DNA from: Octopus sinensis
Lineage: Eukaryota
DNA: 17,837 bases
Assembly (NCBI RefSeq): GCF_006345805.1
Contig: NW_021826355.1
Coordinates: 1-17,837, forward strand
Direction: 5' to 3'
Numbering within the stretch: the first letter of the stretch is position 1; each line of letters opens with the position of its first letter. The position numbers were made by a program, and so were the translations under genes. The notes beneath the pieces were generated by a model that worked only from the letters and a program-made list of their open reading frames with translations, did no database searches and was not told where the DNA came from. This document shows, piece by piece, positions 5,417 through 14,829 of this stretch.

Positions 5417-8400
5417 ATTATTATTATTATTATTATTATTATTATTATTATTATTATTATTATTATTATTATTATTATTATTATTATTATTATTATTATT
5501 ATTATTATTATTATTATTATTATTATTATTATTATTATTATTATTATTATTATTATTATTATCATCAATATCATTATTATTATCATTATTATTATTATTA
5601 TTATTATTATTATTATTAATTATTATTATTATTATTATTATTATTATTATTATTATTATTATTATTATTATTATTTTATATTATTATTATTATATTATCA
5701 TCAATATCATTATTATTATCATTATTATTATTATTATTATTATTATTATTATTATTATTATTATTATTATTATATTATTATTATTATTATTATTATTTTT
5801 TATTATTATTATTATTATTTATTATTATTATTATTATCATTATTATTATCATCATATCATTATTATTATCATTATATTATTATTATTATTATTATTATTA
5901 TTATTATTATTATTATTATATTATTATTATTATTATTATTATTATTATTATTATTATTATTATCATCAATATCATTATTATTATCATTATTATTATTATT
6001 ATTATTATTATTATTATTATTATTATTATTATTTTATTATTATTATTATTATTATTATTATATTATTATTATTATTATTATTATTATCATCATATCATTA
6101 TTATTATCATTATTATTATTATTATTATTATTATTATATTATTATTATTATTATTATTAATATTATTATTATATTATTATTATTATTTTATTATTATTAT
6201 TATTATTTTATTATTATTATTATCATCATATCATTATTTTTATTATCATTATTATTATATTATTATTATTATTATTATTATTATTATTATTATTATTATT
6301 ATTATTATTATTATTATTATTATTATTATTATTATTATTATTATCATCATATCATTATTATTATCATTATTATTATTATTATTATTATTATTATTATTAT
6401 TATTATTATTATTATTATTATATTATTATTATTATCATTATTATTATTATTATTATTATTATTATTATTATATTATTATTATATTATTATTATTATTATT
6501 ATATTATTTTATTATTATTATTATTATTATTATTATTATTATTATTATTATTATTATTATTATTATTATTATTATCATCAATATCATTATTATTATCATT
6601 ATTATTATTATTATTATTATTATTATTTTATTATTATTATTATTATTATTATTATTATTATCATCTAATCATTATTATTATCATTATTATTATTATATTA
6701 TTATTATTATTATTATTATTATTATTATATTATTATTATTATTATATTATTATTATTATTATTATTATTATTATTATTATTATTATTATTTATCAATATC
6801 ATTATATTATCATTATTATTATTTATTATTATTATTATTATTATTATCATTATTATTATTATTATTATTATTATTATTATTATATATTTTATTATTATTA
6901 TTATTATATCATCAATATCATTATTATTATCATTTTATTATATTATTATTATTATTATTATTATTATTCATTATTATTATTATTATTATTATTATTATTA
7001 TTATTATTATTTTATCATTATTATTATTATTATTATTATTAGTATTATTATTATTATTATTATCATATTATTATTATTATATATTATTCTTATTATTAGT
7101 ATTTTATTATTATTATTATTATTTATTATTATATCTTATTATATTATTACATCAATATCATTATTATTATCATTATTATTATTATTATTATTATTATTAT
7201 TATTATCATTATTAATTATTATTATTATTATTATTTTATTATTATTATTATTATTAATTATTATTATCATAATATCATTATTATTATCATTCTTATTATT
7301 ATTATTATTATTATTATTATTATTATCATTATTTATTATAATTATTAATTATTATTATTATTATTATTATTATTATTATTATTATTATTATTATTATTAT
7401 TATTATTATTATTATTATTATATTATTATTATTATTATCATCAATATCTTATTATTATATCATTATTATATTATTATTATTATTAATTATTATTATTATT
7501 TATTATTATTATTATTATTATTATTATTATTATTATTATTCTTATATTATTATTATTATTATTATTATCATCAATATCATTATTATTATCATTATTATTA
7601 TCATTATTATTATTATTATTATTATTATTATTATTATTATTATTATTATTATTATTATTATTATTATTATATTATTATTATTATTATTATTATCATCAAT
7701 ATCATTTATTATCATTATTATTATATTATTATTATTATTATTATTATTATTATTATTATTATTATTATTATTATTATCATCAATATCATTATTATTATCA
7801 TTATTATTATTATTATTATTTTATTATTATTATTATTATTATTATATTATTATTATTATTATTATTATTATTATTATTAATTATTATTATTATTATTATT
7901 ATTATTATTATTATCATCAATATCATTATTATTATCATTATTATTATCATTATTATTATTATTATATTATTATTTTATTATTCTATTATTATTATTATTA
8001 TTATTATTTATTATTATTATTATTATTATTATTATTATTATTTTTTATTATTATTATTATTATTATTATTTATTATTATTATTATTATTATTATTATTAT
8101 TAGTATTATTATTATTATATTATTATTATTATTATTATTATTATTATTATTATTATTATTATTATTATATTATCATCCATATCATTATTATTATCATTTA
8201 TTATTATTATTATATATTATTATTATTATTATTATTATTATTATTATATTATATTATTATTATTATTATCATCAATATCAATTATTATTATCATTATTAT
8301 TATTATATTATTATTATTATATTATCATTATTATTATTATTATTATTATTATGATTATTATTATTATCATCAATATCATTATTATTCTCATTATTATTAT

Positions 8401-11400
8401 TATTATTATTATTAGATTATTATCATTATTATTATTATTATTATTATTATTATTATTATTATTATTATTATTATTATTAATATTATCATCAATATCATTA
8501 TTATTATCATTATTATTATTATTATTATTATTATTATTATTTATTATTATTTTATTATTATTTATTATTATTATTATTATATTAATTATTATTATCATCA
8601 ATATCATTATTATTATCATATTATTTTATTATATATATTATTATTACTATTATTATTATTATTATTATTATTATTATTATTATTATATATAATTAATTAT
8701 TATTATTATTATCATCAATATCATTATTAGTATCAATTAATTATTATTATTTATTATTATTATTATTATTATTATTATATATTATTATTATTATTATTAT
8801 TATCATTATATATTATTATTATTATTATTATATTATTATTATTATTATTATTATTATTATTATTATTATTATTATATTATTATTATTATTATTATTATTA
8901 TTATTATTATTATTATTATTATTAATTATTATTATTATTATTATTATCATTATCACATAGCATCATTATTATTTTATTATATTATTAGTATTATTATTAT
9001 TATTATTATTTATTTATTATTATTTTATTATTATTATTATTATATCATCAATATCATTATTATGTATCATTTATTATTATTTATTATTATTATTATTATC
9101 TATTATTATTATTATATTATTATTATTATTATATTATTATTATTATTATTATTATTATTATTATTATTATTATATTATTATCAATATCATTATTATTATC
9201 ATTATTATTATTATTATTATATTATTATTATTATTATCATTATTATTATGTATTATTATTATTATTATTATATTATTATTCTTCTTACATTATTAGTAAT
9301 TATTATGCCCTAATATTATTATTATTATCATTATTATATTATTATTATTATTATATTATTATTATTATTATTATTATTATTATTATTATTATGTATTATT
9401 ATTATTATTATTTATTATTATATTATTATTATTATTATTATTATTTTATTATTATTATTATTATTATTATTATTATTATTATTATTATTATTATTATTAT
9501 TATTATTATTATTATTATTATTATATTATTATTCTTATTATTATTATTATTATCATCAATATCATGTATTCTTATCATTATTATTATTATTATTATTATT
9601 ATTAATTATTATGCATTTTATTATTATTATTATTATTATATTATTATATTATTATTATTATTATTATTATTATATATCATTATGATATTATTATCAATAT
9701 TATATTATTATATAATTATTATTATATTATTATCATTATTATTATTATTATCTTATTATTATATATTTTATTATTATTATTATATTATTATTATTATTAT
9801 TATTATTATTCTTTTATTATTATATTATTATTATTATTATTATTATTCTTATTATATATTATTATTATTAATCATCAATATCATTATTATTATCATTATT
9901 ATTATTATTATTATTTTATTATTATTATGATTATTATTATATTATTATTATTATTATTATTATTATTATTATTATTATTACATTATTATTAATTATTATT
10001 ATTTTAGTTCATCAATATCAGTCTATTATTTTATTATTATCATTATTATTATTATTATTATTATTATTATTATTATTATTTATTATTATTATTTATTATT
10101 ATTATTATTATTATTATTATTATTATTATTATCACATCAATATCATTATTATTATATTATTATTATTATATTATTATTATTATTATTATTATTATTATTA
10201 TTATTATTATTATTATTAATTATCATTATATCATTATTATACATATTATTATTATTATTATTATTATTATTATTATTATATTATTATTTATTATTATTAT
10301 TATTATGATTATTATTATTATTATTATTATTATTATTATTATTATTATTATTATTATATTTAATCATCATTATCATATTATTTATTATATTATCATTATT
10401 ATTATTATTTTATTATTATTATATTTTATTATTATTATTATTATTAGTATTATTATTATTATTATTATTCTATTATATTATTATTATTTTATTATTATTA
10501 TATTATTATTATTATTATATTATTATTATTATTATTACTTATTATTATTATTACATATTATTACTTATTATTATTCATTATTATTCTTATTATTAATTAT
10601 TATTATATTATTATTAGTATTATTATTATCTCAATATCATTATTATTATCATTATTATTATTATTATTATTATTATTTATTATTATTATTTATTATTATT
10701 ATTATTATTATTATTATTATTATTATATTATTATTATTATTATTATTATTATTTATTATTATTATTATTATTATTCTTATATTATATATTATTATTATTA
10801 TTATTATTATTATTATTATTCATCAATATCATTATTATTATCATTATTATTATTAATTATTATATTATTATTTATTATTATTATTATATTATTATTAATT
10901 ATTATTATTATTATTATTATTATTATATTATTATTATTATTATCATCAATATCATTATTATTATCATTATTATATTATTATTATTATTATTATTATTATT
11001 ATTATTATTATTATTATTCTTATTATTATTATTATTATTTATTATATTATTATTATTATTATTATTATATTATTATTATTATTATCATCAATATCATTAT
11101 TATTATCAGTATTATTATTATTATTTTATTATTATATATTATTATTATTATTATTATTATTATTATTATTATTATTATTATTATTATTATTATTATTATT
11201 ATCATCAATATCATTATTATTATCATTATTATTATATTATTATTATTATTTTATAATTATTATTATTATTATTATTATTATTATTATTATTATTATTCTT
11301 ATTATTATTATTATTATTATTATTATTATTATTATTATTATTATTATATTATTATTATTATTATTATTATTATTATTATTATTATTATTATTATTATTAT

Positions 11401-14400: not shown

Positions 14401-14829
14401 TATATTATTATTATTATTATTATTATTATTATTATTATTATTATTATTATCATCATATCATTATTATTATCATTATTATTATTATTATTATTATTATCAT
14501 TATTATTATTATTATTATTATTATTATTATTATTATTATTATTATTTATTATTATTATTATTATCATATTATTATATTATTATTATTATTATTATTATTA
14601 TTATTATTATTATTATTATTATTATTATTATTATTATTATATATTATTATTATTATTATTATTATTATTATTATTATTATTATTATTTTATTATTATTAT
14701 TTATTATTATTATTATATTATTATTATTATTATTTATTATTATTATTATTATATTATTATTATTATTATTATTATTATTATTATTACTATTATTATTATT
14801 ATTATTATAATTATTATCATTATTATTAT
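5417..14829. repeat. Giant (ATT)n/(AAT)n array with a higher-order marker motif and a roughly 4.87-kb internal duplication
   Basis: Starts with about 48 perfect ATT (5417-5560). It then carries about 60 copies or variants of ATCATCAATATCATTATTATTATC, spaced about 85-270 bp apart. The spacing pattern repeats at an offset of about 4860-4890. Confidence 0.97.

Follow-up and report, generated by a model that had tools for sequence, protein, structure and literature searches.

We found that an (ATT)n array located in a 17 837-nt stretch of the Octopus sinensis genome (RefSeq assembly GCF_006345805.1, contig NW_021826355.1, positions 1 to 17 837 of the forward strand; the whole stretch is called the window below) has a basic higher-order period of ∼2.43 kb: a unit with 17 markers is present in three full consecutive copies (U1, U2 and U3, or copies 1, 2 and 3), with a head before them and a tail after them (Table 1). 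An earlier note, made from the letters of the same sequence, had described a higher-order repeat hidden within the microsatellite. Such a repeat does exist; its unit, however, is ∼2.43 kb in three copies and not ∼4.9 kb in two, as had been proposed.

Composition of the array

Nearly all C bases of the array belong to in-frame ATC units, and they cluster in a 27-bp marker, ATCATCAATATCATTATTATTATCATT, for which we observed 34 matches at no more than two mismatches, all on the + strand and all within the array, with 0 expected. Grouping of the C/G positions produced 63 marker clusters on one strand along with 58 minor interruptions. The clusters are typically ∼120 bp and at times ∼240 bp apart; the subrepeats delimited by the markers are ∼85–270 bp long, typically ∼120 bp. 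Tandem Repeats Finder (TRF) reported for the array a period of 3 with 3164.7 copies, 87% matches and 6% indels. Lower-order repeats thus run head to tail throughout, as seen from period 3 over the 9413 bp and from the marker clusters lying on one strand.

No locus related to the array came to light, the marker motif having no match in the metagenome collection. An Rfam search gave no matches. The open reading frames inside the array are low-complexity runs of poly-Ile/Leu/Tyr/Asn. Judging by its sequence the array appears to be non-coding, with nothing pointing to coding or RNA function.

Three copies of the higher-order unit

In a scan with 500-bp windows, those from 8667–10666 landed at consistent offsets on 6328–7963 (offsets −2368 to −2439) and, alternatively, on 11656–13100 in U3 (offsets +2435 to +2476). 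Global alignments of the units, compared with block-shuffled controls, gave z-scores of 7.3 (U1–U2), 7.5 (U2–U3) and 11.9 (U1–U3). The 16 comparable interval lengths were correlated at r = 0.973 (U1–U2), 0.965 (U2–U3) and 0.997 (U1–U3), with none of 100 000 permutations as good and with the best circular shift four to twelve times worse; for U2, 17 of its 18 clusters were used in marker assignment, in order. The 2.43-kb phase is held through the junction of U2 and U3, where 10617 and 10821 are 204 bp apart, as compared with 194 and 197 bp in the other copies. Thus, a block of many subrepeats is repeated in tandem with its internal order conserved: the pattern of 17 intervals appears three times.

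U1 and U3 are the closest pair. We observed that 76 of the 81–82 C positions match between them (93% of C positions shared); the interval lengths differ by 3.7 bp on average, while the estimated counts of ATT units per interval differ mostly by 0–1 and by 4 at most. The majority of the markers in U3 are exact matches to the motif. U2 departs from both neighbours. Its interval between markers a1 and a2 is 109 bp versus 136/142 in U1/U3, the a7–a8 interval is 273 bp versus 240/240, and the a9–a10 interval is 195 bp versus 171/181; these three intervals differ from those of the neighbours by 24–33 bp, i.e. 7–12 ATT units. The four-C marker a16 is absent from U2, three single ATCs that follow a7 were not recovered there, and U2 has an ATC at 8424, 56 bp after its first marker, which U1 and U3 do not have. 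Because three intervals, marker a16 and the single ATCs set U2 apart, it is a variant of its own and does not come from reading U1 or U3 a second time.

The tail opens like U2: in both, an ATC (in the tail at 13316) lies at +56 from the first marker and the second interval is short (100 versus 109 bp), and the window 13167–13666 had its best alignment to 8275–8619, at an offset of −4892, with the alignment ending at 13502. The pattern of variants across the units is therefore A-B-A-B(start). Beyond 13502 the tail is made of the same ∼120-bp subrepeats, in an order that differs from that of the units. The tail was also considered as a fourth full copy and rejected, with z < 1 against each of U1, U2 and U3. 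Another arrangement, a duplication of the whole array with a junk spacer of ∼330 bp (∼9940–10280), was rejected as well, as the markers are regular in this stretch and it is part of copy 2.

The intervals within the 2.43-kb unit (5962–13257) hint at an older sub-period of ∼570–660 bp, with an interval of 231–259 bp followed by three short ones; peaks of the distances between markers were seen at about 340, 590 and 920 bp.

Table 1. Positions of the array, its parts and the flanking features in the window
Feature	Position	Strand	Description
Whole (ATT)n array	5417–14829	+	9413 bp; 3.5% G+C; 308 C, 25 G
Head	5417–5961	+	545 bp; 48 perfect ATT units, then markers at 5561, 5697, 5836/5850
Higher-order unit, copy 1 (U1)	5962–8365	+	2404 bp; 17 marker intervals, with spacings 124, 136, 121, 231, 86, 132, 116, 240, 118, 171, 130, 125, 84, 137, 259, 96, 98
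Higher-order unit, copy 2 (U2)	8366–10818	+	2453 bp; noisiest copy, distinct variant
Higher-order unit, copy 3 (U3)	10819–13257	+	2439 bp; cleanest copy, near-identical to U1 in C-bearing variants
Tail (U4)	13258–14829	+	1.57 kb; first ∼245 bp (13258–13502) track the start of U2
27-bp marker, example	5962–5988	+	ATC ATC AAT ATC ATT ATT ATT ATC ATT, in frame with the ATT units
(ACT/GCT)n array, internal control	16074–16603	+	TRF period 3, 0% indels; higher-order period of 87–90 bp, 4–5 copies
Reverse-transcriptase fragment	1517–1900	−	Pfam RVT_1, E = 1.7e-5, below gathering score
Reverse-transcriptase fragment	17535–17771	+	Pfam RVT_1, E = 0.043, below gathering score
SINE-like direct pair	3600–3814 and 4417–4631		88% identical, gapless over 215 nt
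SINE-like inverted pair	15578–15783 and 16840–17036		83–84% over ∼200 nt

The 4.87-kb register

The histogram of pairwise marker distances was dominated by the ∼120-bp periodicity and had no peak at 4.87 kb; therefore, order-aware tests were used. Local alignment with A/T matches scored 1 extended from end to end of the array and carried no information; C/G-weighted scoring, with block shuffles as the null, took its place.

The repetition at ∼4.87 kb had first been noticed as two series of marker spacings, from 5962 and from 10821, and the spacings that we recomputed agree with these series within 1–2 bp. For 18 successive spacings from 5964 and from 10821 we observed r = 0.997 and a mean absolute difference of 3.3 bp; this pairing was the best among 990 window pairs, and 500 shuffles of the spacings reached 20.2 bp at best. 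The drift of the offset, given earlier as ∼4859 to 4892, was measured as 4857 to 4891. Single-ATC interruptions repeat in the same way as had been reported: they lie at +59/+106/+154 after 6910 and at +59/+107/+155 after 11778, at +33 after both 7569 and 12449, and at +33/+32 after both 7915 and 12795. The C/G-weighted alignment of 5962–8600 with 10821–13480 scored 554, as compared with 308 ± 17 when the marker-to-marker blocks of one copy were shuffled, and consecutive segments from 5962 to 8487 exceeded the block-shuffle null in this register with z = 2.0, 5.2, 4.5 and 4.4. The barcode match at ∼4.87 kb is real and far beyond chance.

Still, the match does not extend over the array. Window scans showed that the register stops at 8619/13502. 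The head, 5417–5962, had z = −1.3 in the 4.87-kb register, with a local test value of 51 versus 53 ± 6 in the null, i.e. no match, and it is not collinear with any unit. Three segments of the tail after 8487/13378 gave z = −0.4, −0.1 and 1.3, with z = 1.2 for the whole tail. Of the proposed pair of ∼4.9-kb copies, what stands is a common register over 2.66 kb (5962–8619 versus 10821–13502), while the head and the tail do not match. Two full copies at this spacing cannot fit in any case, because twice the offset, 9.74 kb, exceeds the 9.41-kb length of the array. Nor is 4.87 kb the shortest higher-order period, as a period of 2.37–2.47 kb ties 8366–10818 to both of its neighbours; copies 1 and 3 lie 4.87 kb apart. 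The pairing of an ATGA at 9927 with the one at 14828, which had been offered as a further sign of duplication, is uninformative because ATGA occurs four times within the array (8351, 9682, 9927 and 10305).

Stray indels and sequence accuracy

The in-frame pattern of the array is overlaid by strays, defined as stretches left after parsing the array into in-frame ATT/ATC units. The sequence had been described earlier as noisy, and indeed we counted 338 strays, 306 of them frame-breaking; the commonest one is ‘AT’, an ATT with a T lost. Their density per kb is lowest in the head (16.5) and amounts to 34 in U1, 50 in U2, 26 in U3 and 39 in the tail. It is also patchy, with a peak at 10217–10667 and about six changes of rate in 9.4 kb. 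Of the array's 25 G bases, 20 are in U2.

Each copy has strays of its own, whereas in-frame ATC variants recur from copy to copy. In U1 and U3 the number of co-located strays was 24 versus 20.9 ± 2.9 expected at ±5 bp, with no excess at 0–3 bp; pairs involving U2 had only a marginal excess of shared strays (p about 0.01–0.03, uncorrected, with tolerances of 0–5 bp tested). The alignment of U1 with U3 contains 110 gap blocks and 18 mismatches, and most differences in interval length between copies are not divisible by three. A shift of phase occurs in the ATT array every 60–100 bp, while the (ACT/GCT)n array at 16074–16603 keeps one phase over 530 bp and flanking SINE-like copies (named after short interspersed nuclear elements) align without gaps over 136–215 nt.

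The private 1–2-bp indels most likely represent long-read consensus error that was beyond the reach of polishing inside the array, because they are private, frame-breaking and deletion-biased, exceed substitutions in number and peak far from the unique anchors. One group of losses looks different. The markers at 5850, 6088, 6224 and 6345, all near the start of copy 1, where one already belongs to the head, have lost the same single base, with ATCATCATATC in place of ATCATCAATATC, and their counterparts in copies 2 and 3 are intact. The shared loss is either a real variant that spread locally or a systematic read error.

We also sought a change point of the noise exactly at the boundary of the duplication. 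It was found 35–500 bp inside copy 3, which is weak evidence given that the noise is patchy elsewhere.

Origin of the array and alternative explanations

We consider it probable, on the evidence of the assembled sequence, that the three-unit layout is real as assembled and carries an overlaid layer of errors. The array would then have three tiers: ATT triplets form ∼120-bp subrepeats, each opened by a marker, and the subrepeats form the ∼2.43-kb unit. It is known that satellite arrays expand and homogenize via unequal sister-chromatid or interallelic exchange and via replication slippage between misaligned repeats. ATT tracts would provide homology in any register, and the markers would record the register that was used. 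The exchanges, the succession in which they took place and a subsequent loss in the tail are inferred as follows. The latest step was probably a duplication of a two-unit block of ∼4.87 kb, because one set of variants is common to copies 1 and 3 and another to copy 2 and the beginning of the tail. Because the tail departs from U2 after 13502, the history requires one more event or several; the second half of the duplicated block was probably shortened afterwards by deletion or rearrangement. Rolling-circle amplification, which the earlier note had suggested among possible mechanisms, is neither supported nor excluded by our data.

Several observations weigh against this interpretation. Two events or more are needed to account for the array, as the tail and U2 no longer agree beyond 13502. 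A second reading of the same DNA would likewise leave U1 and U3 almost identical in their true variants. The accuracy of the copies differs (26, 34 and 50 strays per kb), and the rate of non-AT strays drops sharply at 10856–11316, just inside U3. At its right end the array stays noisy until the unique flank begins, which fits genuine degeneracy as well as poor polishing, and the one-base loss shared by four markers does not fit well with random error. Finally, the number of copies is read from the assembly sequence itself and is to be taken with that qualification.

One alternative is that the duplication was produced by the assembly. The simplest form of it, two noisy reads joined with too little overlap, had been proposed earlier and does not survive: the layout lacks the unbroken collinearity from the join to the array end and then into the flank. 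Where the shared 2.66 kb ends, another 2.2 kb of array comes behind copy 1 (8620–10818), with no flank sequence; behind copy 3 come 1.33 kb of non-matching array (13503–14829) and then the unique flank. A single simple misjoin is excluded because the tail following U3 differs from the sequence after U1. For the same reason, the difference in the following sequence, U3 is not a same-molecule re-read of U1; that it re-reads U2 is excluded by their unlike marker content and interval lengths. It follows that no fewer than two units have to be real, namely U1 and U2. What could still be wrong is the number of copies: with a real 2.43-kb repeat of at least two units, one unit or a two-unit block could have been falsely added, either through a repeat-register join across haplotypes (heterotype false duplication) or through under-collapse of noisy reads (homotype false duplication). 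We regard such inflation as possible though doubtful.

According to the Vertebrate Genomes Project (VGP), false duplications rank with the commonest errors of assemblies, and copies that differ in consensus quality point to the homotype kind (PMC8081667). Our array resembles these long-read cases in having adjacent near-identical copies, unequal consensus quality (34, 50 and 26 strays per kb in the three copies) and a repeat-rich, hard-to-polish setting. The poor and patchy consensus in the array implies few supporting reads. The stray rates, besides differing by copy, shift not far from 10819, where copy 3 begins, and the agreement of U1 with U3 (76 of 81–82 C, unit counts mostly within ±1) resembles two reads of one sequence. 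On the other hand, the differing continuations of copies 1 and 3 speak against the simple form of inflation, as does an offset that, doubled, is longer than the array. The marker content of the middle copy is unlike that of both its neighbours, so that U3 is no re-read of U2. There are no Ns in the window and no gap or contig end at the junction, though joins inside a contig leave no mark in sequence. As for the shift in noise, with about six rate changes in 9.4 kb one near 10819 is not surprising, and the change point lies within U3 and not at its start.

Another alternative takes the sequence as accurate: the duplication is real and the private 1–2-bp indels are genuine mutations accumulated after amplification in an old, decaying array. 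Several features are compatible with it. The last 100 bp at the right edge of the array are as interrupted as its interior, the density of the ‘AT’ class is near-constant in all units (13.7–19.7 per kb), and the ATCATCATATC loss shared by four neighbouring markers of copy 1 looks like a real variant spread locally. However, microsatellite slippage alters whole units and not single bases, while here frame-breaking strays outnumber in-frame ones by ∼10:1 and gap blocks outnumber mismatches by 6:1, the reverse of neutral divergence. No indel predates the duplication, whereas 93% of the C variants do; indels are densest in mid-array, at the greatest distance from the unique anchors; and the flanking repeats are free of such indels. 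We find this alternative very unlikely.

With the layout taken as physically real, one could go further and see in the array an ATT satellite of three tiers (3 bp, ∼120 bp and 2.43 kb), young and in active amplification, with an incipient two-unit period of 4.87 kb, one that would probably be polymorphic in length between haplotypes. In our opinion this stronger version is rather unlikely.

Flanking sequence

The window contains, besides the ATT array, many di- and trinucleotide arrays and retroelement debris. The nearest relatives of the reverse-transcriptase fragments (Table 1) are proteins from ENA/Logan contigs, with 48–64% identity; an exact look-up of the reverse-transcriptase fragment gave no record. 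Each of the SINE-like repeats adjoins a (TA)n(TG)n microsatellite; these repeats presumably resemble tRNA-derived SINEs of cephalopods. The (ACT/GCT)n repeat probably accounts for a minus-strand open frame at 16014–16580 (188 aa, poly-Val/Ala). Two other sites have unusual composition. The AT/TG-rich compound microsatellite at 4110–4460, with (AT)82 between CA/TG runs, is self-complementary: its inverted arms of ∼150 nt are 70–72% complementary and 0–6 nt apart. At 2501–3000 the GC skew is −0.55 (C over G), because of (CCT)16 at 2563–2610 and (AC)41 at 2859–2939.

Comparison with known repeat systems

At the level of sequence the array has the features of a higher-order repeat (HOR) and is a new example of a known architecture. 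In HOR satellites, such as primate alpha satellite, as in our array, monomers are arranged head to tail, a block of several monomers is repeated in tandem, the blocks resemble each other more than adjacent monomers do, and the edges of arrays are more degenerate; unequal exchange is the accepted mechanism of their growth. Alpha satellite differs in having a fixed monomer of 171 bp, while here the base is a 3-bp microsatellite with variable subrepeats of ∼120 bp. Also, our array has just three block copies in 9.4 kb and no sign of centromeric location or protein binding.

The array can be compared as well with minisatellite variant-repeat (MVR) patterns and with nested tandem repeats. ATCs among ATTs make a positional barcode that exposes duplications hidden by composition, and, as in nested tandem repeats, there are repeats inside repeats. 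MVR maps, however, normally deal with units of 10–60 bp in arrays of ∼1 kb, while here three nested levels extend over 9.4 kb.

For users of the assembly the 9.4-kb stretch is unreliable at base level, with ∼3–5 spurious-looking indels per 100 bp, and its copy number should not be trusted without spanning reads. For the search of such structures the array shows that the shortest period must be sought: a noisy middle copy had masked the true 2.4-kb unit. More generally, barcodes of variant units can reveal higher-order structure in seemingly featureless microsatellites.

In biological terms, unequal exchange in an animal genome rich in repeats would be an ordinary source of such an array, and neither a gene nor a function is attached to it. 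If the young-satellite version were true, we would have here a microsatellite caught in the course of turning into a higher-order satellite.

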